DNA of 64,000 nt from Klebsormidium nitens (taxonomy: Eukaryota; Plantae; Klebsormidiophyceae). The position numbers were made by a program, and so were the translations under genes. Positions 35,402-61,903 of the stretch are shown piece by piece. The notes beneath the pieces are model-generated. The model was not told the origin of the DNA. It saw nothing but the letters and a program-made list of their open reading frames with translations, and did not search any database. The first letter of the stretch is position 1, and every line of letters begins with the position of its first letter. Where the stretch lies: assembly GCA_000708835.1 (NCBI GenBank), contig DF237165.1:1-64000 (forward strand), in the 5' to 3' direction.

Positions 35402-38400
35402 TCAGTTTGCCAGCATGGCAGGGGAGGGGAAATGGTCCATGTCGAAGAACGGGCTCAAGCCGTCAATCGCCTCTGGGCATTCCAGGCTCTGTGCGTAGTG
35501 CTGGAGCGCGGCCGCGGCCGCGAACACCTCGTCGTCGCTCAGGTTGTTGACGAAACGCGCCCCGCCGATACCGCTCATCAGCGGCACCCGCTGCAGGCCA
35601 TCGCGCGCGATAGTCATATCGCGGAGCCCCTGCATAAGAAGCAACATTTCTCCACGTTAGTCCAACTATTAGACTACAGCGCCTCCGTTCGGACAACCAA
35701 ACCGACGACGGACGGACACATAGTAGGAGCTCTGATACAAAACGATCGTGGTCCTAGCCGAAGAGCGCGTCAAAACACATCTTCACTCCGCACGTGAACG
35801 TGAAGCAGAAAGCCTGTCGAGACCTTCACTTCATAGTCACCAGCGGATTCAGTAATCGAAGGGCCACAAAAACAGTGTGCGCGCACCTTGATCAGCAGTT
35901 TCGGGGTGACGGAGGCGTGCCAGAAGGGCAGCCGAAGCGCGCGCATGATGGCGAACACGCGGCGCTTGTGGTCGGCCGTGATGTAGCCGCGCCGGTGGGC
36001 GATTTCGGTGGTGAGCGCCATGTCGATGTTGACCGCCTCGCCGTGCAGCAGTTCGTCGTTGGTCTCTAGCGCCGCCATCTCAATTTCGGGGGAGAACGTA
36101 TGGCCGTAGTCGACGACACGTGTCAGCACGTGCTCGTACAAGTTGCACTCGAGCTCCTCCAGCATACCCTGGATGGACCGCCGCAGCACAAGGCGCGCAG
36201 CGGGCGTCTGCACGGGAATACGATTGTGGTTAGATACAAGCCACTTGGTTGACACTTCACAAGCCGGGTTGTTGGTTATGGTGTTTGCACCGCACACAAA
36301 GATTTCGCCACATTATCACTCATCCTAAGCAACTCCGAGGACCTATCCTCGTCAAGCTTGAAAGGATCGTCGAAGTTCGCTGAGTGGATGCCGAAAAGGC
36401 GAGGCAGACCTACGCCATTAAATTCGAAATCTGCACCATGAAGGCAGCATTCGCCAGAACGTTATATGCGATAATCCAGCTTATCTGTCTTCGTCCCATA
36501 TTGCCTCACCTGGAATCTGGACGCAATGAGCTGCGCCGAGTGCTGCTCGAGCATGTGGAAGAGCGGCGCGTCCTTAATGGCGGCCATCTTCAGAATCTCC
36601 GCGGCGCCGTTGCTGAGGTGGCGGTCGTCCAGCGTTTTCAGGAACGCGCGGTCGTAAAACACACCGAGCGGCGGGCAGTATGTGCCCAGCTTGTTCTTCT
36701 TGTTGTGGAAGTTGACAGCAGTCTTCACGCCGATCGACGCGTCGACAACGGCCATCAGAGTGGTCGGGATCTGCCCAAATTGTGGAGTAACGTCAGCTAA
36801 CCGTCGAGGATCGGTGAATCCTAGTGTACCGTTCACACCGTTCCGGTGAATCCTAGTGTACCGTTCACACCGTTCCCGTTCAGTCGCAGATCTGGCGGCT
36901 TCTTGCTCGGCGACGGATACAAAGGAAATGATAATGAAGACAAGGATTTGGGTGACAGGGATCGAGTCCGCCTGCTCCCGAAGACACATGCAACTGTTAC
37001 GCCCAGACCTTTGTAGTAAGCGAAGGCCGAACTCTCATGAACCGAAGGCCAACAATTCCCAAAAAGGAGCAGACCATTGACATGCTTGCTTATGATCCCC
37101 ACCTTAATGACGGGTGTGTTTCGTCGGTACAGGTTCGCCGCCAGCCCCACGACGTCCAAACACACCCCACCTCCGATGGCAATCAGTGGCTCCCGTCGCC
37201 TGGGTCAAACGGAAGGGGCTCAGCCTCTGGCAAAGAGGGCGTTATCAGTCGAAAGGCCGTGACTTGCACAATCACAAACTTACGTACATAATCATCAATC
37301 GCCTCGAAACATGCTATGCAAGTACATCGCGATGTTAGTAACACTCGTCAAGCAGACTACATCTCGTAGATATCCTCATACCTGTGCAGTTTGAAGTCCT
37401 CAATCTGCTGAGCAACCTCGAACACGAGGTCGAAGCTCTTGTTGGCCTCGCAGAACGGCAGCTGGATGATCTTGCTCTCTACCCGGTGGTGCTCCAAGTA
37501 CTGCACCATCACATATTTACGGTCAATCATAGGGTCATCAACAGTTGCCAACTTAAGACATAGTCATCCAGAAAGCACGAACTGAGAACCTGACTGAGAT
37601 CAAACAACTGATATTGATGAGTATAGTCTCTAACTCAGACCAATCTTATGAAGTTGGACAATTAACAACCAGCCAAAGTGCACTGTTGATGACCAGAGTG
37701 CACTGTTCATGACAACCCATCAGAATTGTGCGAGTCTGACTTCACAGCGAAGGGACTGATGCACAGGAAATACCAACTTCTGCGCACCTTGTCTAGCTTG
37801 GCACCGTGCAACCGGTACCAGTTCTCATCAACAACCAGCAGTCTTCTCAGCTGCTTGCCAGCACTCCTGGTGTAAGGGGCCACCTGGGGCGGGAACGTGT
37901 TGGGCACGATGCCTGACAGCAAGGCCTGGACAAAGAGGGGGTCAATTAGTGTGGCGACGCGAGGGTTGTCAGACCTGTTGTTGAACAATAATGTACCTCT
38001 CTGTATGTCTTGAACACAGGTCTGCCTTTCCTGTGTCTGTTCACAGTGCTAATCACAGGATTCACAGTGTTGATCACACTGGATTCACGGCGCTAGTCAC
38101 CGGATTGCAGCGGCAATGGTGACTTCCAAGCACATGAGTAAGCTGTGAACCAATCACTGAACATTGTGATGAGGACAGCAGAATGACAGGTTAGTGAACA
38201 TTGCTTACCATGTTGGAAGGGTTGAGGAGATCCTCGCACTCCTCTACGCTATACATGATGGGCTGGGTTGCCTGGACCGTAAATTTTCCCTGGAAACAAA
38301 AAAGATCTGTTGAGCACGTGTCTGCATGCACTAGCTGTTCATATGCAGAACTTGTGCCAACTCCCTTCCAGAGATGCTCTCAGCAACAAAATTACAATGT

Positions 38401-39407
38401 CTTAAGTACCTTCAGAGCCTCTGCACAGAAGAACAATGAACCAAGACCACTTACTGTGTGGAGACCCTTGAGGCCTGACCCCAGTTCACCAGTCAGCCCG
38501 CTGTCAAGAACAGAAGCCTCCCTAAGGTCAGGGAGTGGCTGCGCCTCAACAAAGGGGCGTGGAGGAGTTGCCACCGCACTAGGCTGCTGCACTTTAGGCG
38601 CCCTTGATAGGCTGGCAGATCTGAATGGACAAGAGCAGAAGACTGTCAGAAGGGTCTGCCATGTCACAACATTGCATCACAGTGCTACTGAAATGTGAGA
38701 CACACCACCTTCTTCGCGGCGCCCTGCTAAGGTAGGATCCTGGAGCTATGAGACACTGTAGTGGAAGCCCTGGATGGGTGATTGAAGTCTCAGATAATTC
38801 TGACAGGGACCACTGACAAACCAATGACATTTGAGAAGTCAAGGAGGTTGCGCGTCCTTAAGAATGATACTGACAACAATCAGTTGTGAAGTAATGCTGT
38901 CCGTTTCATCAGGATCACCAGACCGTAGTTGTTTGCCTCTTCAAAGAATTGCCTCTTCAAAGGATTGCCTGTACAAACAACATAACTCCTGCCCTGATAA
39001 CAGCAATGCTGAAGGTACTGTTAATGATGACACTTGACCACTTCATGGATGAAGGATCTGGCGCTTAGCATGCATGCAATGCCCCTCAAGGGAAACATCC
39101 TGACAGCCAGCCACTTTAGGATGATCTGGAAAGCGCCATGGCCTCAGAGCTCCCGTTCTACACAAACTAGCTGCAACGCCCCTCTTCTATGCCCATCAAC
39201 ATAAGTGAGAGGTTTGCAGACCCACCCTTGAGCGATAGCCCCCATTGGAAGTCCTACAAACGAGCTATTGGCAGCTCGCTCTAAGTTGACACCGCCCATG
39301 ATTGTCGGGGCCGCCAGAGCCCTCCCAGGCCGGGAGCCGCTCATCACGGTGTCAAATGGCTGGCGCACCACACCGCCAAATGTCTGCCTTGCGCAGACGG
39401 CGTCCAT
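35402..39407 (-). CDS. eevs: 2-epi-5-epi-valiolone synthase-type sedoheptulose 7-phosphate cyclase (DHQS-like; gadusol/mycosporine ring formation) with N-terminal extension
   Basis: Spliced product contains GKFTVQATQPIMYSVEECEDLLNPSN, RRLLVVDENWYRLHG, EANKS, RREPLIAIGGGVCLDVVGLAANLYRRNTP, IPTTLMAVVDASIGVKTAVN, KNKLGTY, NGAAEILKMA, GMLEELECNLYE, RVVDYGHTFSP, LLHGEAVNIDM and RDGLQRVPL. Exon 1 is 39407-39226 and its phase matches the next exon. Confidence 0.92.
36812..36875. repeat. Exact 32-bp tandem duplication in an EEVS intron
   Basis: CGGTGAATCCTAGTGTACCGTTCACACCGTTC x2. Confidence 0.95.
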
Positions 39408-39739
39408 CTTGCTGCCTGTCTAGTTGATTTCTCGTCTTTACTTTTTGACTCGGCTCCCAGAATGTGGGTTTGGAAGAACTTGCTGCACCGCTGTACTGCG
39501 GAAGGGTAGCCTGCTGGACCGGAGTAGACTACCTTTGCAGCGCCAATTCCTGGCGGCTCTGCTGTGCACGATGCTCGTGATGGTAAGCCCTGCTGGTGGA
39601 TCAGCTCAGGTGGCGAGCGGAGGAGCAGTGCTGAGCTGGATGCTAAGGGGCGGAAGAAGAGCTGGGAGCTTACTTGATCGAGCAACTTGCAGCAAGTGTG
39701 CTGGGGAGAATGCAGCAGGCAGATCCCCTATATCCTCCG

Positions 39740-41100
39740 ATTCGGCGAATCAAGGGAGGTGCTGGTACACAGAGCTCTACGGTACATTCAAGGAAGCTAG
39801 AGCGACATGTACAGCCCAGCTAGCTGCCAAGCAGTACCTGTCCACCTACCTTATACTGGTGGTGTACACTTGGAAACATGCCTTGGACGACATTGAGGCA
39901 TCCAAGGCATACGGGTACCTTGGAAACGATCAGCGTGTACAGGACAGGGCCCTGCCAGGGCCCTGACAGTGTCGTTCCCAGTATACCGGTAGTAGGTACA
40001 GCCCAGCCAGCTCCATGTTGTAGGCCAAAGCCCGCGCTTTTGTGTTGATGTGGCCGTTCTGTCATGGTGCCAACATGATCCATTTGATTCTTTGCCGGCT
40101 TCCTGTGCGGAGCTCCACGTCATCCAATGTCCCCTCGGGGCCTCGCAGCAGCCGTTGAACCCCTAAAACCTTATCTCTCCTAGCCTAGGAAAAGGGTGTG
40201 ATTCTCCAACGGCCAGCTAGCGACCTTCGGCACCTACCTACGGTAGTAGACCTTGCAGAGCTACCTCAGCCTACCGTACCTACCTACGTACCGTACGCCA
40301 ATGGTGTGGAGTATCGTGCAACCTGTCGACAGAGCATCGTACCATACGTGTACATGTGCGCCGGCTTCTGTGTGTGCTTTTTCCAAGAGTTTTGTACAGA
40401 TCCGGTACCTACCGCTTGTACACGGCTTCCGGCTAGGAAAGATGTGGGCAGTACCGTACTTGGAAGGGTACAGCTGCCGCCTGCGCATGGCAGAGCGGAA
40501 GCCCACGTACACCTCCGGCTGTGGTTGCGATTTCAGAATTTCAGAATCAGTGCATGGCGTCGAGAGAGAATCCCAAGATGCATGCAGGGGGCTTCGTTGC
40601 AACTTTAAGGCCGCCACGTTGCCTCAAAAAGATACTTTTGTAAAAAGTACGCTTCGTCATAACTGTAGCTTGACGTCATGCACATGATTGGGTCTGAAAA
40701 AGCGAACGCCGAAAAAGTGAATTGAAAAGCCTGTCGGGCTCTTCGTCCCGGTAGAAAAAGCGACTGGCTTCAAGCTTTTTTGCCTTGCCATATGGAGCCG
40801 GTAGAATACACCGACTGTCTGATCACAACGGCTACCACCCGGAAGCCCGCTAGTTTCGGGTCGTTGCCCGACATTGTCGTTGTCAAGTACAGGTGGCAGT
40901 CTTCTGCGAGGGAGATCCTAGGTAGGTACAAGCTGTCGTACCTACAAGGTCCCAAACCTGACTTGCTGCATTTGTACACACGCCCACAGGCTACCGCGAG
41001 AGACGGGGTAGGACCGTACAGGGAGGTTAAAATTGTAGTGCAGGTCATCCAAGATGGGGTCGCACGCTTTCTTTTGATACTGGTACTTCCAAGTTCCTTC
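39740..41100. promoter_or_regulatory. Bidirectional EEVS/MT-Ox promoter region dense in GTAC and GTAGGTAC/GTACCTAC motifs
   Basis: 8-mer hits at 39992, 40276, 40405, 40922 and 40938, plus many bare GTAC and CCTACC, between two divergent start codons. Confidence 0.6.
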
Positions 41101-41315: not shown

Positions 41316-44300
41316 ATGCCGGCCCCGGCGCCCCCATCCTCTCTGCCTCTGTCCGACCAAATGAATGGCAATGGGGCTGCCCAGCCTAAAGCCGGGACCC
41401 CGGAGGGTGTGCATGCAACGGGGCAGCCTGACACGCCCATCGAGGTGATCACCGATCTGCTGCAGAGAGCAATGACGGGCAACTCTGTTGAAGAGGTCAA
41501 AGGGGCAGTGCAGAAGGCGCTGGCAGTAGCTGGGGGGCTGGATCCCTACTTGGAAAAAGTATCTAGCAAGCCAAGCGAGGTAAGCGAGCAGGCTCTCTGC
41601 AGGGGGCCCGCTGAACAGAAATGTGGATTCTCAGCCGTAATGCCACCACCTCTCTGGAGCACAGTCATGGTCTGATGGTACAGATGCTGATGAGTGGCAC
41701 TTCTAGATCTCTAGGAGGGCCAGGTAAGTGGCAGGTGGAGCTCAAGCCTTTCAATGAGGAAAACACACAAGATGCTGTTTGAGCAATTGTCTTGTTCAGC
41801 AGGAGGCAATGAGGAACTGTGAGTGTGAGGGTTCAAGGGTTGCAATGGGCAGCTTCTAGGGTTGGCCGTCATATCGTTCGCACAGGATCAAGCTCACGAT
41901 GAGCTTGGCAACTGCTTGAGTTCTGAATGATCCTGACAGTCGCTGTTTTGTGGGTATGAATTGCAGTTAATCAACGAGCTAATTACAGCTTCAATGAACG
42001 CCCCGTGGAGCGACTTCCATGCCCAGGTTCGCAACACACCCTGGTTGACAGCTGTCTCTTTATCAGTAGATCCCAAGAGTAGCAGCATGCTCTGCCAGTA
42101 TCCTGATCCTTCGCACACCATCCTGGAACCCTAATTTGACTGTGAGGAGTCTGACACTGGTTGCTCACCTCTTCCATGAATACCTCTGGCTGCGCCGATG
42201 CTGAAGTTTTTAGGTCAATCTGTCGGTCCTAAAAGATCTCCAATGCTGGCGGCTGGTACAGGGCAAGACCATCTTCAAGCAGAAGAAGGAGTGCTGCGCG
42301 GGCTCCCTGGAGGGCCAGTTTCTGAGATCTTTGGTCCAGCTGACACATGCCACGTCCGTATTGGAAGTGGGCATGTTCACGGGGACCAGCACGCTCGCCA
42401 TGGCCCAAGCACTGCCCGATTTTGGCAAGGTAGGAGAATTGAGCTTGGACTGTCACGGTATCTTCTCTCAAGATTTCTAGACTGTGCTGGCTTGTGATCT
42501 TCCACATGCTCTTGACAGAGCTTGAGCTCTAGACTTACCAGATAATCCAGGGGAACGATTCAGCTAGGGTTATGAGACCTAAGCCAAACAGACGCTAGCT
42601 TGGGCATCTTCTATCCGCCAGCCAATGTCAACAATGTGACCATTTATTATTCTCGAGAGATTGTCTTTTACATAAACCTTGTTTTCTTGGAGTCTCTATC
42701 TATAGCATGGGCAATTAGGGTTTTGGGGTGACATACTTCCAGAATGGGCAATTAGGGTTCTGAGTGGTAGAGCACTTTCCTGACCCACTTGATTCGTTGT
42801 CCAGGTTTATGCACTTGACATCGAGCCCTTCCTCAAAGAGTTCACTGCCCCCTACTTCGAAAAGTCTGGCCTACAGAACCGCATTGAAGTGGTGGTAGGC
42901 CCTGCCAATGAGTCCATTGAGAAGCTGGCCCAGCGGGGGGTGCGCTTCGACATTGCTTTCCTGGATGCGGATAAGAGCGGCTACCTGGGCTACTACAAGC
43001 AGCTCATGGACAATGACCTTATTGTGCCCGGGGGCATTGTGGTCGTTGACAATTCCCTTATGAAGGTAGTTACCCACTCTAATTTCAGGACTTTGCAGCT
43101 TTTGGTTTTGAATGCGTTTCCCACTCATCAAAGTGAAGCAATGACGATTCAGAAGCTGCGGGTTAAAGTTAGATTCAGTGGCTTAAGGCGGCCCAATCTC
43201 TGAAGTATTGCCTGAGGGACCATGGATTGTCTGAAACTCGTGCTCAGAACGGTAATTTTTTTGTGTGCCAAGCTGAATCACGCTTTTTTGTGTTAGCCTG
43301 TTTCCTCGACCTCACACATTAGGGTTTTAGGGGCTCAAAGCGGAGTCTCAGTTGGCAGTTCTTTGATTGATATCGTCCTGACTGTCAACGGTACGCTTTT
43401 CCGCTCCTTCGATGGTCCGTTTACCACTCCCGTTCTTGTCCGCGAGCAGGGCCGGGTGTACGCCCCGTCCGAAGAGGACGAAATGGCGGACGCGATTCGG
43501 GAGTTCAATGAGTACGTCAGCAACGACCCTCGAGTGGAGGTGGTGGCCATCCCGCTCAGGGACGGCATCAACATCGTCACACGCCGGTGAGGCAGCTATC
43601 TTACCGGTAGCTTTTGCGTGAGCGCCGGTGAGGCGGCTATCTTTACGTGAGGACCGCTTTATTACAGGATTCACGTCTGCTGCTGGCCCTAATTGTATGT
43701 CTGAAGCCTGAATTACAGAAAGTGCCATTTTCTTCAATTTTGGCAGGCACCATGAGTTGGGGTGCTGTTTTGCAACACGAAAGTTTCGGCGCTAAGATGC
43801 CGGACTTCGGATGAATTTGGAACTCTCAGCTCTATTGGTCTGATTCGGAAGAACGACATTGCCTCAGTGATCGGTTCTGGTTTGAGGACCACGCTTACAA
43901 ATTATTCTTGATTGTACAGGCCCGTGAAGGGGGACGAAATCGTGACGGGGGTGGGAAGCTCCAACATCTTGCAGCGGTTCAAGCTGGTCAGCAAGGTCGC
44001 GCTTATCACAGGTGAGTTTTGCCAGACACAGTGAAGGACTCTCTATCTCTACGCTGTTGTCTTCGTGCGGGGGCTGTTTTCCGTTTCCACGATTGCGCTT
44101 TCCTGTCGCTTTCCGTCTTGACAGCGAGTGCTCGGTCACACCGTGTTCGTGAACTACACCTGCCAGGGCGTTCAGACCCGCTCTGACGCCACAAGTTCAG
44201 TATGAGATGATGAAGCAAGACAAGCGAGCGGTTTCCTGTTGTTAAGAGGCCCCTTTCAGTGCCAACGATGATCTACTCGCTTCTCAAGCCATCAAGACAA

Positions 44301-46092
44301 AGTCCTTCCCTTGCTGGGCTCTTCCGATTGCCCATTCGTCGCGCCTGCTGTTTGCAGGGGCTGGGCAGGGTATAGGCCGCGCGTTTGCGCACGCTCTCGG
44401 GGAGGCCGGCGCGGCGGTGGCTGTGGTGGACATCAATAAAGGCAAAGCCGAGGAGGTGGTTGCGGAGCTGCGGGGCAAGGGCATCCGCTCGATCGCCATC
44501 CAGGCGGACGTAACGCAGAAGAAGGACTGCAAACGGTGAGGGGGCTGGGGTGTTTTTGAAACTGTGGCTGGAAGATTTCAATTTGGATCACGCTCAGTCT
44601 CTTGTGAGCTTGGTCGGTAAGCAACTAAACCCAACCCAATTGGGACTTGGCTTACAGTCGAAAGTGCTGAGTCGAGACAGTCTGGTAGAGCGAAAGCAAG
44701 TGTCGTAAAAGACTTCATGACCCGAGGAACGGCAACAAAATGCAAACAGACTTTTCAGAAGAAGTCAACAGGACCTTCGGGTTTGAGCACATCTAAGGCT
44801 TGCTACATCCCTCGGTGGGTGCAGGATGGTCGACGAGACGGTGGCGGCCCTGGGCGGGCTGCACATCGCCGTGAACAACGCGGGAATCAACCGGAACGCG
44901 TCGGCAGAGGAGACGTCCGAGGAGGACTGGGACGCCACCTTCTCGCTCAACACCAAAGGCGTTTTCATGTCCTGCCAGGTGCGCCAGTTTGTATTCATCT
45001 TTGGCCTCGTCAACTGGCCGTGGCACCTTTCGGCCAACCTCTCAGGATTTGCGAGACGCAGCGGCCGTTTTTATTCCGTAGGCAGGGCTTTCAGAATTTG
45101 ATCAGCCATACGGAAAGAAACGACGCGTTGTTCACGACAGGGAACATAGGTTGCGCCGTGAGTAAATCTGAGAATCTAATGCGGGTCAGCGCCTGTCTGA
45201 TTACATGATCAAGTTGGGTTTTTGGCAGTCTTGCTTTCTGCAGCTTCTAGCTTTATGGATTTCCGAGTGTCATCGCACCCTTCTCGCACCACATCCATCG
45301 CTACAAAGCGACGATAATGTATTTCATTCCTATATGGCTGTGGGTTGATTTTCACTTTCCCCACAGGCGGAGGGCGAGGTATTCCTGGCGCAGAAATACG
45401 GCAAGATCATCAACACGGCGAGTATGGCGACGCTGCTGGTGCCGCACCCGCAGAAGCAGATCGCGTACAACTCATCCAAAGCGGCGGTCGTGAAAATAAC
45501 GCAGACGCTCGCGTGCGAGTGGGCGGACCGGGGGGTCAACGTCAACTGCATCTCGCCGGGGATCGTGGAGACGGCGCTCATCATGGTGAGGAACACGTGA
45601 AATCTAACTTCGCCCGCCGGCAGGTGCACAAATCGCGAAGTAGTTAGAGCGTTTCTTCTCTGCAGCAGATCCACAGAATGGAGACACGGTCTCGTCTCGA
45701 CTGAAGTTCCGTTGGCAAGACTCTGCCCAACGAGACACGTGCAAAAACCTTATGGGGTTGCGCACGTCACTTTTGCCTGCGAGCGTGCGATCTTGTCTGA
45801 AATATTGTAGTGCTCCCCCGTTTTCCAAACACGCTACACCTCAGGCTCAAGGGTACTGGAGAGAACTTCCGCAGATTCGACCGCAAAGGATCTTGACGCG
45901 CGCCTCTGCTTCGTTCTGCAGGAGTCCCCAACTCTGAAGCCCCTGGTGTCGGAGTGGCTGTCCCAAATCCCCAAGGGCCGCCTCGCATCAGTCGCAGACC
46001 TCCAAACAGCCATTGTGTACCTTGCTTCGGATGCTAGTAACTACATGGTCGGGCACAACCTCGTCATCGAGGGCGGTCAAAGCTTGTGGTAG
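41316..46092 (+). CDS. mt-ox: Bifunctional methyltransferase-oxidoreductase (MT-Ox): N-terminal CCoAOMT/MysB-like O-methyltransferase fused to a C-terminal SDR
   Basis: MT motifs: [71 protein letters not shown]. The phase-2 intron 43587-43919 joins in frame to [63 protein letters not shown] and [13 protein letters not shown]. Confidence 0.88.
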
Positions 46093-48334: not shown

Positions 48335-51300
48335 ATGGGGTCTTTGGCAGACGGAGTGGAGCAGCCTCAGTGGATCAAGGAGCTGCTGGAGATAGCGCCG
48401 TCAGCAAGGAATAAGGTACGCCTCGGTTGTCACACCGCTGGTTCTTCTCCTCATGCAGTGGCAGTCTGCTGATTGTGGCAGTCTGCTAATTGTAACATGG
48501 ATTAGGGTTTGTGGCTACCCTGCCTTGTGTTGTCCTTCCGCTGTCATTGACGGAGCACAAAGTTTTCTCTGCACCTTATGCTGTGCAGACTCTTCTTCCA
48601 ACTGACATACTCCTAGACAACACTCACTGGGCTTCTGAAAACAGGATTGCCAGTCATTTCAACAGGATGTGATTTTCATATGCGCAAGGCTGTGCTGCTT
48701 TGTTTGAGGAGGCACGTTTTCACTGGACATGACTCTCTGGTTGCAGGAGGTCCTTGAGGTGATTACCGGCAACGCTGCCGCCCGCGCCCGCCGCAACGTC
48801 TTTTTGGCGCGCATCACACCAATGCAGAAGCTCCAGGCCAGAATCAGGAGTCTCATTGCGCTGTGCCTGTTTGCATGGTCGTTCCCTGCCACAGCAGCCG
48901 TCGTGTTCGTCCGCTGGCTCCTGCATAAGCTTGTGGGCAAGCCGGAGCCAAGGGTCCGCCCAAACGGCCCCAGGAAAACTCTCGTGCTTACAGGTGAGCC
49001 ACTGGGCGGTCAGCATTGACAACATACACGAATCTGCAGCTTGGGCGCTATTCGCATTCGATACACTAAACATGGAAGGTGGATCATGGACTTTCCAAGT
49101 ACATCTCCTGGTTGTGATTCAATTGGAGCAAGCCAAGCCATCAGCAAGTCGCTTACATCCCGCTCCTTGGACCCCTTCTAATGTTCAGTTCTTCAGTGAG
49201 TTCCTACAATCAGTGAGGCCCTTGCTCTTGGTCTGCAGTCCATCTCCCAGTGAAACCCTAAAACCCGAACAAGGTTGAACTTTTGCTCCAGGTGCCAAAA
49301 TGAGCAAGTCGATGCACACTGCCCGCCACTTTTCACGCATTGGGTGGCGCGTGGTGGCAATTGAGCACCACAAGTACTGGATGTCGGGGACGCGCTTCTC
49401 CAACTGCGTCGATGCATTTCACACGGTGCCCCCGCCTGATGTGGATCTAGTAGGCTATCTTAAGGCAATGCGGCGGATCCTGGCCAAGGAGAAAGCGGAC
49501 ATCTACATGCCCACCTCTACCGCTTTGCTTGAGGTAAGAGGCGGCATCTTTGATCAGAGCCGTGGATTCAAGAAAGCCTTGTCCGCTCTAATGGTTGATG
49601 TTCAGTTTCGCATCTTCGAGTCCAAGACAAAGTCCGTTGTAACAGATTTTCCAAGTTTGCCATAAGCCTCCGCTTCTGCTTTACCTCCGCCCCTTTGTCT
49701 TCGGATTCATCGTTGAAACTCCCAGAAGATGTCGTTGAATAGCGAATTGACACTTCAGGCCGCCCCCCATCCGGAGATTCTGAGCTTCAGCATTACCAGT
49801 GTGTCTGCGACGCTTCAACCCTCTGAAGCCGGATTTGGATAAGCCCACGCGTTCACCAGGGCTTCGTTTTCATCAGCTCGCCGTTATGTTGGACTGCTCA
49901 ACGAAACAAGCACACGACTCGGTCCAGATTTTCAATTGGTTTTCCTCGCTCCTTCCAAGCCACGGTCTTCCAAGAATTCATCCCGCACCTTTAATCAAAG
50001 CTTTAAAGCTTTGCACGCAACTGGTGGGAAAGATATTTAGTCGAAGCATAACCTTGGCGACGTTGGCGGTTGCAGGTGTACGACGCTCTAGTTCTCGACG
50101 TACTTCCCCCCGGGTGTGTCCCCTGGACGCTCGACGCGGCCACAACGGCACAGCTGAACAACAAGGCCCGCTTCAGCGCGCTCTGCCGTGACGTCGGCGT
50201 GCGCTCACCTGCCTACTTCCACATCGCCACTAAGCAGCAGCTGCTTGACTTCAACAAGAAGCCCGAGATCTTCAAAGGGAAAAGGTAAGGCTCGGGGCCC
50301 ATTTAGGATTTCCTTTGCCGAATCTGCACTGCCGAGAAGATTATTCAAAGTTAAGCCTCTCATTCGATGGTGCAGTAGAGCCTCACGATGGAGTTTCAAA
50401 ATTGGGAAACCATCGGATGTCTTCTTCGTTACAGCAGGAGGTGAATAGGGACCAGGGGCAGCCGAAGATGCCGTGAAGCTGCCAGTTACTCTAGCATGGC
50501 AATCTCGGATGCCGTTCTTCGACCACTCGAAGCAGCATCCATGATTGGCTCCTTAGCGACTGATGGTCAGGAGCTTACCTCCCGCGCCACAACCTTCTCC
50601 CTTAATCCTGCCTTTTCAACGAATCTTCTTTAACCTTCCGCGAAGCTACGTACTTCTTTGAGCTGCTTGGGCTCGTCCTGAAACCAGTAATTCCGTTTGC
50701 TCCAGGTTCCTGCTCAAGAGCATCGCGTACGACTGCATCAGCCGGTCGGAGCTGTTCACACTCCCGTGCGACCAGGCCCGCCTAGAGCGCCACGTGGAGA
50801 GCATTGATTTGGACCCGACGCACCCGTGGATGCTGCAGCAGTTCCTGGAGGGCGTCGAGTACTCGTCGTACAGCATCGTGCACCGCGGCCGCGTCGTCGC
50901 GCACGCCGACACCAAGGCCGAGCTCAACAACTTCAGATACGGACAGGTGAGCGCGCGGGCCGCTCACGTGGCGGCTGTGAGAGGAGAAAGGCGGACTAGA
51001 TATTGCGCAACGTCTTGGGATCTGAAAGCTCATAAGCATGCTTAATGCACTCGTGGGCCTTGGAAGTGTCGCAAGTTGAGGCCCTTCAGAAAACGCGACG
51101 TCTAAATCCGATGTGTCTTCATGTGCGAGCAACAATGTGGCTTGGAGGGTCGGGTCTCCAATTTCCTCACCTCATCTGCAGGCTGAACTCGGTGGCGGCC
51201 TGGCGCCATTCAAAGTTTTGTCGTTCATCGGATCTGTCTTCCCGACCCGAACTTTGTTTTCAGCTGCCACTGGTTGTTCTGATTACTATCTTGCCTATGA

Positions 51301-52363
51301 GTTCGCAATTGCGCATACCTACTCGAGACCTCCCTTCCGGATCATTTCGTCAAACTGACCCGGAGCAGCTGAACGCTGGAAGCTCAATTGGTTGCCCACT
51401 CGATCCCCTCAGCCCATCTCCCGCCTTCGCCGCAGGTGGACTCCACGCAGATGTGGGAGTGGGTGACCGCTTTTTGCGCGGCGGGTAAATACACGGGCAA
51501 CCTGTGCTTCGACTTCATCCAGGACACGCACGACGGTTTGCTGTACCCCACCGAGTGCAACCCGCGCATCAGCAGCATCAATACGCAGTTCCACGACCAC
51601 CCCGCGCTTGCCACCGCCTTCACCGACCCGGAGGTGAGGGCTACTATCTGATCGGGATCGTCCGGAAAGTCGCAAGGCGCAAGAGCGTGTCTGGAGGTCA
51701 TGAGCATTGGAACGTGGCTGTTACGTCTCAGACATCTGTTTCGCTCCCAAAACCAGCGAAAAGGATGCCCCGAAACCTTATTTCTGATGTTCTTCGTCCT
51801 TTTTATGCACTTGCACCAGCGTTGACTTCCTGGCAGAGAGCAGCTGCCCGGAAGTCCCGAACATTCAGCAAGACTGCTCTCACTCTTCTTCCGGAAGTCC
51901 AGCTCAACTGTTCGCTCGCTGGCAAGATCCCTGAAGATCGTCATTCCACCTTATCTGAGACTTTGTCGTCGTTCCCATGACCCTCGTGTTTAACAAAACT
52001 TTCTTCGAAGCTCCCAAGTATCTGGACGGAGTGAATCCCATTTGCGCCTCACTGACTCTCCGCGTGTCCCTGTTCTGCGCGCAGTCGATCGGCAAGTGCC
52101 TGAAGCCCATGCCCGGCAGCGCCCACATCTACTGGTGGTGGGGAGAGTTCTGGACGGCCGTGACAGGCGGAGATTATGCTACGTGGTGGCACCTGGTGAC
52201 GGCCGGCAAGGACGGCGTGTTCGATCTAGACGACCCGCTTCCGTTCCTCTTCTACAACTACCTTCAGATTCCGGTCCTACTGATGCGGAACGTGTTGGGC
52301 GGAAACCCCTGGAAAAAGATCGACTTCTGCATCGGCAAGCTGATTGAGATGTACGGAGACTAA
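48335..52363 (+). CDS. mysC: MysC-type ATP-grasp ligase (mycosporine amino-acid ligase)
   Basis: KTLVLTGAKMSKS, HKYWMSGTRFSN, LLKSIAYD, PWMLQQFLEG, LCFDFIQ, TECNPR, DDPLPFL and terminal WKKIDFCIGKLIEMYGD match the cyanobacterial MysC pattern by recall. Seven coding exons have GT-AG borders. Confidence 0.92.
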
Positions 52364-57810: not shown

Positions 57811-60800
57811 ATGATTCCTGCCTCAGGTGCAGCCAATGGGGCCAAGCGCACCACCGAGATCTCTGGCTATGAAAGCGCATATGCGAAATCATCATCTAGT
57901 GGCAGTGTGGCCATTGGTAAGTGCGGACTTTGTGTACACCTTTGACACAGCACTGCTTTCTTTGTGAAAGTACTGGCAGAACTCTTTTGAGCAGTGTCAG
58001 GGGGGCCCGATGACCCATCTGCTTCTAAAGGTATAGAGTATGAGCCCTTCGAGTGAGCTATGTTCTCCAGATCTGTTGCTGTTTCTACTTGAGCTGTGGT
58101 GAGTGCGCACTACCCGAGCTTCCAACAAGTTGCTTGCTGGAAATGGTTGCTCGCTATGTCGAGAATGTGTATCCCTGTCCAGAGCTCAAGGAATTCTTAA
58201 GTGATGCCAGTGTGACTCTTTTTGGTGCAGCCCGCGTGTACGAGGCGATTCAGGGGCACTGGTACAGTGCCTGCCTCGGCGTTCTGCTGGAGCTGAACAT
58301 TGCGGACATCCTTGAAAAGGAGACCCAGCCCATCTCTGTTGAGGATGTGAGTTGCATTCTCAGCTGTCTAACCTGGCAGAAGACAGGGTCAATGATTCCA
58401 ACGAAGCCAGGTTTGCAGCACTTCAACGATATGAGCCGCTTCCTTTGATTCCAGTGGGGCAGTTGACATGTTGTAACACTCGAGTGCTCAAGCCAGTGCA
58501 CCAGCCTGCTCTCAAAGAATGCAGTTCAGCGCTCCACAGGTCTTTTTCGCACCGTCGGATTCTGAAGAATTTGTATGCCCCCAACAGATGCTTGGTCCCA
58601 TAGCGGTTCATCATTTGCAATTGCACGGATGGGCACAATGCATCCAGCCAGCTCTGAACTGACGGTTCTTTGTGGTCATCACAGCTGGCCAAGAAGTCGG
58701 ACGTGTCTGCACCTGGAGTAGAGTACTTGTATAAAGTGCTGAGGGCGCTAGCGCAATGGGGGATCCTGGACGAGGAGGCAGGTCAGAACCCTAATTTTTC
58801 AATGATGGCCCCTGAAAGCATGATGCCCTGCAGCTAGGAAATTGTTTCACAGATCTCCGAAGTTGTACACCTTTTGGGAGACTTCTGTGGTGCACTGAGC
58901 AGATTACCTTCACCTAACATAGATTCTGCCTTTCTTCTGCCTTTCTAATTTGTGCGCAAAATCTTCCCTTTTTCGTCAGTGAGCATCTTGTGATTGTTGC
59001 CTCAAGTCCTTGGTATAACGAACCTGATATGGCCAGGTATAACGAACCTATAATAACGAGAACGGAAGGAAAAACAAATTAGCAAGACATTGTGCATTTA
59101 AGAGGTTCGATGCCGTTTGCAGACTTAGCATGGGTCACCTCGCGGTTTGACTTTCTCAAGGACGGTTGTTGCAGGCAAGAAGTTCTCGGCCAATGACTCC
59201 ACCCGGCAACTGGTGCGTCCCCCCGGCCAGCCGACGCTGGGCCACTTTGCACACCACCAGATCAACCAGCCCAAGTGGGACGCCTGGAAGGTCCTGCCCG
59301 AGGCAGTGCGGCTCGGCAAGACGCCCTTCGCGGTGGCGCACGGCACCGACATGTACGGGGTAAGGTGCCGCTGACAATACATGATCACGCTTCCAAATGG
59401 TCGTGAGAAGCTGCTTCGAGATGTCCGATTTGCGAAAGATAAGCAAGCAACGAAAGGAAAAGGTCTCTTTTGTCGCTGAGAGGGAACGTAAATTGGATCT
59501 TGTTGCTACTTAGATCTGGCTTGAAATATGGTGGGCCGCTTATCTCCGTGTCGATCAGCCGAAAAGATGATTGACTTCCAAAAACTTCGTGGTCAAGATT
59601 CCTCGTTTACAGGCCTTCTTCCTCCGTTGTACTAACGTGTGGAAACAGCGAAAGCAGAAAACTAATTCAGGAGCCGATGTGGGCACTCCGAGCTGTTATA
59701 CGACTTTGCTCTTGGCAGGTCAACGCTCCGGGGACCGGGCCTCCTTGTGAACGCAGTTGGGCTTGTGTCTATTCCAAAAACGTGAAACCCCCACGAACAA
59801 AGTTTTGTGGTGTTCTACGCCAGACAGTTGCCTCGAATATTGGCATCGCTCAAGGACCCGCTCTGTCTCCTTACCCCCAACAGCATCCTGCCCTTCCACG
59901 TTTCCCCCCTGGTTTTCTCTCAAGCTTGAAACTTTACACCTTTCCTTCCAATTCTTGAAGCCCCCGCTTCTCCTTTCCCCAGTATGACAACAAGCCCGAG
60001 AACGCGGCGTTCCACGAGGAGTTCATGCAGTCAATGACCTACTTCACCAAGCACAGTCTCGACGAGGGGGGCCAGGTCACGCTTAAGGATGTGTACGACT
60101 GGAGTCAGGTCGGTACGGTGATGGACGTGGGTGGCGCGCGTGGCGAGCTGCTGAGCCGGTGCATGCTGTACGCGGGGGAGAAGGCGCGGGGGGTGCTGCT
60201 TGATCGGCCCTTCGTGGTCGCCAGGTAAGAAAGAAAGAAAAATGGGGGTGCTTGAGCAGTATTGTTGGCGCAGGATGGTGCTCTGTTCAGAGCTTGCACG
60301 GGAGATTCTCGGGCCGTCGGCTTTCGACCTTTTTGGAGTGGACCCTTATGAGCTTGCGATTGTGGGGACGGAGAGCCAAATCAATCAATGTGAGCAACCT
60401 GCGGTCGCTTGGTGCGTGGCAACAGTTTCGCAATCTGCTGAAACCTAGAATGAGGAAGTTGGACGTCCTCTCCTTCGTGCGCTCAAGCTCTCAGAATCCG
60501 TCATTCAGTGCCACTGCCCAAAAAACATTTCTGACTGAAGCAGAGACGAAGGGATCTGAGTACAGCTACGTTCCGTCCTGATCATCCTGACCAATGCGCT
60601 CAACGGATGGGTCTGGTCTTCAACATGCCGAGGGCATCTTTCTTTTTGCAGCGTCGACGTAGACGCCACGTTCGAAGCGAAGGGCGTAAAGTCCGCGCGC
60701 GAGCGGCTGTCCCTGGTGGGCACGGAGGATGTGCGGACGCCCTTCCCGGACGCCGTCAAGGCCGCCCACGTGGACACGATCATCATGAAGCATTTCTTGT

Positions 60801-61903
60801 CCGGATTCACGGACGACGACGCCCGGATCGTGCTCAAGCATTGCGGGGAGGTGCTGGAGCCCAACGGGAAGGTGCTGCTGCTGCAGGTGGGCTTTTGAGG
60901 ACGGGACATCTACTGTCTGAACTTTTGGACCTTGAGAGCCCTTGACTGATGAAGGGCAGCAAAGGGTCTCCGTACAGCAGAAAGGTGTTTCAGATGAGAA
61001 GACGTTCCGCAGTTTGTGAGTCAGGGTTGAGGAATCAGTTTAGAACGAGACGTAGTCGCCTTTGATTCTGAACAATTGGTCGTTGTGGACCTGCGCCGTA
61101 TTGGGTTTCTTGGCGGTCCTTATCCTTCTCGCTTATTTGATCAGGGGCTTGTTGCAGTGACCTTTGCTGCCAAGTCAGTCATTCTGAGCCCTACTGCGTA
61201 TTTTGTACGGGAAACTTCGTTTCATGTCATCAAACTGGTTCATTTGTATCATCTCATGCTCAACCGGTTGCCCAGCCAATCAGGCTCTCAAAGGTGAAAT
61301 TGAGTCTCAACCCCTTCTTTTCGCCTCGCGCAGACCCTCGTACCGGAGGCCGGCGATAGGACCAACAATGTCTGTGAAGACGGAGTGGCCCCGGGTAAGT
61401 AGATTGACACGTCATTACCCGTCTTTATCCTCTTTCGTTCGCCCTCTCTATCACGAGGCTGTACATTCTTAGCTTTGCTGATCAAGTTTGCTGGGAGAGC
61501 TCTGATTTTAATCTCCTTTCTCCCAATCAGATAGCTGCCAGCTTGGAATCTGTTTCTTACCGGTTTTGCTTTATTTTGGGCGGCTTTCTGGCCTTTGACT
61601 TCTCTTTGTCGGTCACCAGAACGGATTGCAGCCACCATATTGTCCTACCGAAATTCCACTCCTTCCATTAAGTCCGCTCCATAATTCTTTCTGCCGTGGC
61701 ACGAAGGTCGAAAACCTGAGCTTCTTACTGTGTCTTCTCGTTTCCCAGGTCTGTTCGCGATCGAGATCCTGGCCATGTGCCCGGGCGGCTCATGGAGGAC
61801 GCGCAGCGAGTGGGAGGAGATCTTCGGGTCGCAGAGCTTCAAGCTGGACAGCAGCAAGCCGGTGGGGCCCAACATGCACCTCATGGTGTGGAGCAAGCAG
61901 TAA
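57811..61903 (+). CDS. Class II SAM-dependent methyltransferase with dimerisation domain (COMT/ASMT/PhzM fold; O- or N-methyltransferase)
   Basis: LELNIADIL and LYKVLRALAQWGIL (winged-helix dimerisation part), GKTPFAVAHG, VMDVGGARG, LLDRPFVV, IMKHFLSGFTDDDARIVLKHC, PNGKVLL and GGSWRTRSEWEEIF. Stop TAA at 61901-61903. Confidence 0.88.

Follow-up and report, generated by a model that had tools for sequence, protein, structure and literature searches.

A single spliced gene for a fused methyltransferase-dehydrogenase of the MT-Ox family beside an EEVS-type cyclase gene in Klebsormidium nitens, and its intron positions in green algae, fungi and fish

MT-Ox is the second enzyme of vertebrate gadusol synthesis. 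In zebrafish it is the product of zgc:113054 (LOC541322), which was characterised by Osborn et al. 2015 (PMC4426668), and it carries a Methyltransf_3 domain followed by a short-chain dehydrogenase. The gene lies head-to-head with that of its partner EEVS, a sugar-phosphate cyclase. Bifunctional MT-Ox with adjacent EEVS was also described from Aureococcus and Coccomyxa, and the vertebrate genes were proposed to derive from algae (Osborn et al. 2015, PMC4426668). In Klebsormidium nitens, Foflonker & Blaby-Haas 2020 (PMC7826186) described a cluster of EEVS, MT-Ox, MysC and O-methyltransferase genes (kfl00216_0060, _0070, _0080 and _0100), with kfl00216_0070 a double-domain MT-Ox adjoining EEVS. 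Trees of each MT-Ox domain are presented there and the cluster is tied to klebsormidin A, and gadusol-core mycosporines (klebsormidins) are reported from Klebsormidium (PMC7826186). Here we analyse the MT-Ox gene at positions 41316-46092 of a stretch of 64,000 nucleotides (nt) from a K. nitens assembly (contig DF237165.1, from here on “the window”), with regard to its exon-intron structure, its transcripts, its relatives and the genes around it.

Judging by matching gene order, the window is probably the published kfl00216 locus. A fused MT-Ox beside EEVS is already known for green algae, including K. nitens, and is not new. What may be new is the sharing of introns with trebouxiophyte algae and chytrid fungi, and the place of the gene away from the vertebrate clade; a literature search found no paper on MT-Ox intron positions or on MT-Ox in fungi, nor one pairing gadusol with chytrid or Taphrinomycotina fungi. 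An initial annotation, made from the letters of the window, had warned that automated annotation could split the gene, a worry not borne out by the published K. nitens work, where it stands as one double-domain gene.

We put a probability of about 0.9 on the reading that the methyltransferase and dehydrogenase pieces are a single spliced ten-exon gene on the + strand encoding a bifunctional MT-Ox. The window is intron-rich eukaryotic DNA with a G+C content of about 53%. The ten exons run from an ATG at 41316 to a TAG ending at 46092, and their lengths sum to 1,704 nt in one frame, i.e. 567 codons plus the stop. Introns 1-9 have phases 0, 0, 0, 0, 2, 1, 2, 0 and 0. Exon borders were taken from joints in transcript contigs and, after correction of the joints for offset, were checked site by site for AG/GT. 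Exon 1 (41316-41579) starts with the ATG and holds the N-terminal region before the methyltransferase core, aligning to fish residues 7-62, and exon 2 (41967-42026) adds 20 codons. The methyltransferase domain, matched by Pfam Methyltransf_3 from position 24 to 203 of 204, is spread over the next three exons: exon 3 (42262-42429) with the S-adenosylmethionine (SAM)-binding motif LEVGMFTG (positions 24-71, E 1.9e-11), exon 4 (42805-43065) with the core and the DADK ... DN metal-site motifs (positions 73-156, E 7.9e-17), and exon 5 (43450-43586), which finishes the domain (positions 159-203) and stops 2 nt into an Arg codon.

The dehydrogenase half follows after intron 5. Exon 6 (43920-44011) encodes a linker and the first dehydrogenase beta-strand (KVALIT), and contains no Met. 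Matches to Pfam adh_short and adh_short_C2 lie on exons 7-10. Exon 7 (44358-44535) carries the cofactor-binding motif (G)AGQGIG (adh_short positions 8-65, E 1.4e-11), exon 8 (44825-44978) the NNAG motif (positions 67-117), and exon 9 (45367-45585) the catalytic Ser and the YxxxK motif (NTASMA ... YNSSK; positions 123-186, E 1.8e-17; 74% identity to zebrafish). Exon 10 (45922-46092) gives the C-terminus, with 76% identity to zebrafish, and the stop codon TAG at 46090-46092. Transcript contigs reach upstream of 41300, giving a 5' untranslated region, and the 3' untranslated region extends at least to 46299.

The two enzyme halves are separated by intron 5 (43587-43919, 333 nt, GT..AG), and it is here that the gene could be taken for two. 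Read without splicing, the methyltransferase frame at 43576-43590 is GTC ACA CGC CGG TGA, and thus seems to end. The GT at 43587-43588 opens a consensus donor, GTGAGG, and an acceptor TACAG closes at 43919. The TGA at 43588-43590 is therefore only an apparent stop, lying within the donor and being spliced out. The CG left at 43585-43586 joins the G at 43920 to form an Arg codon, and the frame continues through PVKGDEIV...KVALIT, the G that spans the next joint, and AGQGIGRAF. In the frame of exon 6, intron 5 itself has several stops, the last of them three codons ahead of the acceptor. No Met occurs in that frame from this last stop through the end of exon 7; the first one is the start of exon 8, 3' of the GxxxGxG cofactor motif. 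The dehydrogenase half thus has no start codon of its own before the cofactor motif. A near-copy (20 of 21 nt) of the donor region of intron 5, CGCCGGTGAGGCGGCTATCTT, lies at 43623-43643 on the + strand, 41 nt downstream of the real donor.

Twenty public sequencing runs share words with the 5-kb stretch that holds the gene, and nine of these, from four studies, hold about one third of its words, which is the share taken up by exons. Four runs, one from each of the four studies, were aligned to the stretch, in the form of contigs labelled as RNA only by guess. The joint 43586|43920 (GT..AG, with 333 nt skipped) is present in one spliced contig in each of the four runs. In three runs a single contig of 2.0-2.2 kb contains all ten exons, skips nine GT..AG introns and has zero mismatches to the window; in the fourth (X10) one contig covers exons 1-7, and the same joints are spread over more than one contig. 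The loss of all nine introns at canonical sites is what is seen in contigs derived from mRNA, and the two halves are expressed on a single mRNA. No joint at the near-copy of the donor (43623-43643) was seen in the contigs of the four runs. Run X10 also has a low-depth contig (44999-45393) that runs from intron 8 into exon 9, at a depth of 3.8 compared with about 250 for the spliced form, which reflects a small amount of unspliced RNA or of DNA.

The same locus was compared in a related organism, represented by a 19-kb Logan assembly contig (L001). All ten exon lengths are identical to those of the window and every AG/GT splice site is kept. Codon differences between the two are overwhelmingly silent (155 synonymous versus 15 non-synonymous), and in exon 6, the first after the apparent stop, there are 5 synonymous and 0 non-synonymous differences. 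Intron 5 has diverged with insertions and deletions (310 nt in L001 versus 333 nt in the window), with the donor CGCCG|GTGAG and the acceptor CAG|GCC unchanged. The near-copy of the donor is not present in L001.

Both halves belong to the MT-Ox family. When exon 4 was searched without a profile among 1.84 billion representatives, the matches were fusions of 520-600 residues from the fish Channa striata, the chytrid Rhizophlyctis rosea, the prasinophyte Pycnococcus provasolii and the chromerid Vitrella, each of them collinear with both halves in tblastn comparisons. Many fish proteins that bear the name zgc:113054 match the Channa protein at 84-93% identity. Searches by shared words added MT-Ox fusions from the chytrids Rhizophlyctis, Fimicolochytrium and Thoreauomyces, from Saitoella, Savitreella and Protomyces of Taphrinomycotina, and from the brine shrimp Artemia; the full-length fusions from fungi and Artemia are P0022, P0278, P0279, P0280, P0281, P0293, P0305 and P0322. 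Across many lineages the homologue is encoded as one fused frame, and in Pycnococcus and Saitoella this frame has no introns at all.

For comparison at the level of residues, nine MT-Ox proteins were aligned and the window exons were added as separate fragments. The exons are 55.7% identical to zebrafish LOC541322 over 531 columns, 68.6% identical to Trebouxia, and 50-53% identical to chytrids. They agree at 128 of the 130 columns that are invariant across the nine proteins. The SAM motif, the DADK/DN metal site, TGAGQGIG (TGxxxGxG), NNAG, the catalytic Ser and YNSSK (YxxxK) are all present and aligned to zebrafish. The chytrid proteins of Rhizophlyctis rosea (P0022) and Fimicolochytrium jonesii (P0279) are fused like that of the window. 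By comparison, cyanobacterial MysB is a stand-alone O-methyltransferase of the DDGS pathway that carries out an analogous methylation step and belongs to the same methyltransferase superfamily (PMC7826186); unlike the window MT-Ox it has no fused dehydrogenase, and its partner is DDGS rather than EEVS.

That these pieces form one gene can be set against two other readings of the locus. One would have two separate genes, an O-methyltransferase ending at the TGA at 43590 and a dehydrogenase whose promoter and first exon would both lie in the 333-nt gap. It draws on the TGA being in frame if intron 5 stays in the transcript, and on prokaryote-type gene callers breaking the L001 locus into pieces. 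The gap is, however, bridged by spliced contigs in all four runs, and since the frame of exon 6 is closed by a stop three codons ahead of the acceptor and first offers a Met in exon 8, a dehydrogenase made on its own would be missing its GxxxGxG cofactor site; the exclusively synonymous change of exon 6 relative to L001 and the single fused frames of homologues across many lineages tell the same way, and we consider two genes very improbable. The fusion might also be real and be accompanied by a minor isoform, in which retention of intron 5 or use of the duplicate donor (at about 43628) would give a protein with the methyltransferase only. The 21-nt near-copy of the donor 41 nt downstream could serve such an isoform, and the low-depth X10 contig with part of intron 8 suggests some unspliced RNA to be present; on the other side, neither a joint at the second donor nor a contig over intron 5 occurs in the four runs, which is weak evidence given that contigs drop rare variants, and the duplicate is not conserved in L001. 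We regard the isoform as unlikely. Two points weigh against the single bifunctional gene: its transcript evidence consists of contigs, RNA by guess only, which cannot reveal transcript starts and ends or rare isoforms, and the 567-residue protein of the window did not come back from protein searches with fish, chytrid and P0309 queries. The single fused gene of the initial annotation, with its apparent stop inside a splice donor and with no independent first exon for the dehydrogenase in the gap, nonetheless agrees with the junction-spanning contigs from four independent studies, with the continuous frame, with the conservation in L001 and with the alignment, in order, of both halves to full-length MT-Ox proteins, those of fish and algae included.

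The partner gene of MT-Ox lies upstream on the opposite strand. A gene for an EEVS-type sugar-phosphate cyclase occupies 35522-37988 (- strand; its 5' end is not mapped), with matches to Pfam DHQ_synthase and DHQS_C. Exon pieces were mapped at 35522-35629, 35905-36186, 36513-36773, 37103-37201 and 37381-37500, and tblastn with the Pycnococcus EEVS gave matches to the gene at 45-85% identity. Two clean cyclase exons match the EEVS structure 4P53 at 97 and 90 bits, compared with 58-59 bits for the DDGS structure 5TPR, and by this best match the cyclase is EEVS-like in sequence. The head-to-head arrangement of EEVS (-) and MT-Ox (+) is also found in L001, Channa, zebrafish, Pycnococcus, Trebouxia and the chytrid Fimicolochytrium; in Rhizophlyctis there is no EEVS within 8 kb. 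Among Logan contigs, one of 2.4 kb encodes a predicted protein of 756 aa (P0074) in which residues 178-410 align to the EEVS exons of the window and residues 496-709 to the methyltransferase exons of MT-Ox, and which looks like a fusion of EEVS and methyltransferase.

The fused protein would act as follows. Its N-terminal half is predicted to be a SAM-dependent O-methyltransferase of the cation-dependent type, and its C-terminal half an NAD(P)-dependent short-chain dehydrogenase; in the gene, the phase-2 intron splits the short linker between them. The neighbouring EEVS would make 2-epi-5-epi-valiolone, which MT-Ox, by homology with the zebrafish enzyme, would oxidise and methylate to gadusol. 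According to a proposal in the literature, the MysC-like ATP-grasp and the second O-methyltransferase encoded downstream may then convert gadusol to a gadusol-core mycosporine, for example klebsormidin. The fused enzyme could instead use a different cyclitol, or catalyse two steps other than those of zebrafish MT-Ox, and its product would then not be gadusol. In favour of this, the fused protein is only about 56% identical to the enzyme that has been characterised, fish have no counterpart of two of the enzymes in the algal cluster, and algae and fungi group apart from vertebrates in the gene tree described below. Against this stand the 128 of 130 invariant columns kept, the conservation of the EEVS partner and of the head-to-head layout across lineages, and the gadusol-core klebsormidins reported from Klebsormidium (PMC7826186). 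A different product seems improbable to us, and gadusol formation from 2-epi-5-epi-valiolone is what we infer for the fused MT-Ox.

Intron positions link the gene to those of other green algae and fungi. Introns were mapped exactly in eight other MT-Ox genes by comparing each protein with its own locus (L005, L006, L007, L008, L002, L010 and L004 being the loci compared with the window), and were placed on one alignment with the window exon fragments. All nine introns of the Trebouxia gene are common to the window in column and phase, as are 8 of the 11 in Tetradesmus, the other 3 being its own. The chytrid genes, whose introns are short (58-121 nt), share everything they have: 7 of 7 in Fimicolochytrium and 6 of 6 in Rhizophlyctis. 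With about 1,700 possible sites, such coincidences cannot be chance. Channa and zebrafish have 10 introns each, of which 1 (after exon 8, phase 0) is common to the window, a match close to chance level, for which our arithmetic gives about 0.05 expected matches. Vitrella shares none of its 12 introns, and Pycnococcus and Saitoella, with 0 introns, have none to share. The position and phase of intron 5 recur in Trebouxia and Tetradesmus; in the two chytrids the junction intron is likewise of phase 2 and is offset by one residue, within an RRR run whose alignment is arbitrary.

A gene tree of 23 named sequences (among them P0309, P0285, P0295, P0290 and P0298) was built with P0309, a natural relative of 422 residues that is 88% identical to the window exons, representing this lineage. 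Fungi form one clade (support 100/99), as do vertebrates plus Artemia (100/99), with Vitrella adjoining the latter (98/98). P0309 lies inside Trebouxiophyceae (99/99). A tree constrained to keep the chlorophytes together, with P0309 outside, is worse by 33 log-likelihood units and is rejected by the approximately unbiased (AU) test (p = 0.005), for a grouping chosen after the first tree had been seen. A tree in which the green algae form one clade apart from fungi is not rejected (AU p = 0.24), and we do not claim the nesting of fungi within green algae suggested by a quick tree. The trees thus place the MT-Ox of this lineage with trebouxiophyte algae, adjoining fungi and not adjoining vertebrates. 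Trebouxia sp. C0006 (P0285, locus L006) resembles the window in its nine intron positions and phases and in its head-to-head EEVS, but is a chlorophyte, whereas the window is thought to come from a streptophyte, so that the gene tree groups the two against the species tree. Provided that the streptophyte origin holds, this nesting is at odds with the relationships of the species, and exchange of the gene between terrestrial algae may lie behind it.

The sharing of introns and the position away from the vertebrate clade argue that this lineage was not the vertebrate donor. We propose tentatively, at slightly less than even odds, that the MT-Ox gene moved between eukaryotes together with its introns, that the fusion and its junction intron are old, that one intron-bearing lineage of the gene is found in terrestrial green algae and fungi, and that vertebrates did not acquire their gene from this green-algal lineage in recent times. 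The initial annotation had held that a streptophyte alga carries the same EEVS/MT-Ox gene pair as fish, and that the pair bears on an algal origin, by horizontal transfer, of vertebrate gadusol synthesis; it had looked to a phylogeny and to intron positions for confirmation. The pair is real, with EEVS divergently upstream as in fish, and through P0309 the fusion groups among MT-Ox proteins. It adds little on the donor, being placed within Trebouxiophyceae and having 9 of 9 introns in common with Trebouxia and 1 of 10 with fish.

Further genes of the cluster lie downstream of MT-Ox and set the window apart from fish, where the MysC-like and second O-methyltransferase genes are not found. Four exon-like pieces at 49279-52360 (+ strand) match positions 11-387 of NCBIfam NF005315 (PRK06849) in order. 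We take this to be the ATP-grasp family that includes MysC, and the match suggests a MysC-type ATP-grasp; the pieces have no match in Pfam. Methyltransf_2 pieces of the second O-methyltransferase were found with Pfam at 59959-60895 (+ strand). The order in the window, EEVS, MT-Ox, MysC-like, one further gene and O-methyltransferase, is that of the published four-gene mycosporine cluster. In Pycnococcus, the EEVS/MT-Ox pair stands beside a gene for an 870-residue protein with a D-Ala-D-Ala-ligase C-terminal domain (L003, 1926-4538). This ATP-grasp has no match in the window by tblastn at E 1e-3, and its difference from the PRK06849 type of the window suggests lineage-specific tailoring steps.

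Between the divergent EEVS and MT-Ox genes, a block of 1 kb (39214-40221) is 81% identical to L001, which is nearly the level of exons. It has many insertions and deletions, stops in all six frames and no synonymous excess, and Rfam gave no match at 37.9-41.4 kb, the block included. The block may control both genes, or it may be transcribed as non-coding RNA.

For the biology of the organism, the splice junctions confirm that the fused second enzyme of gadusol synthesis known from fish is also expressed in a terrestrial green alga, next to the same first enzyme, and thereby underpin the published proposal that the cluster makes gadusol-core sunscreens (klebsormidins). Exact exon coordinates are now available for cloning. 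For the family, the added value is modest and lies in the intron map and the tree, according to which green-algal and fungal MT-Ox genes share an ancestral structure that is largely absent from the vertebrate genes.

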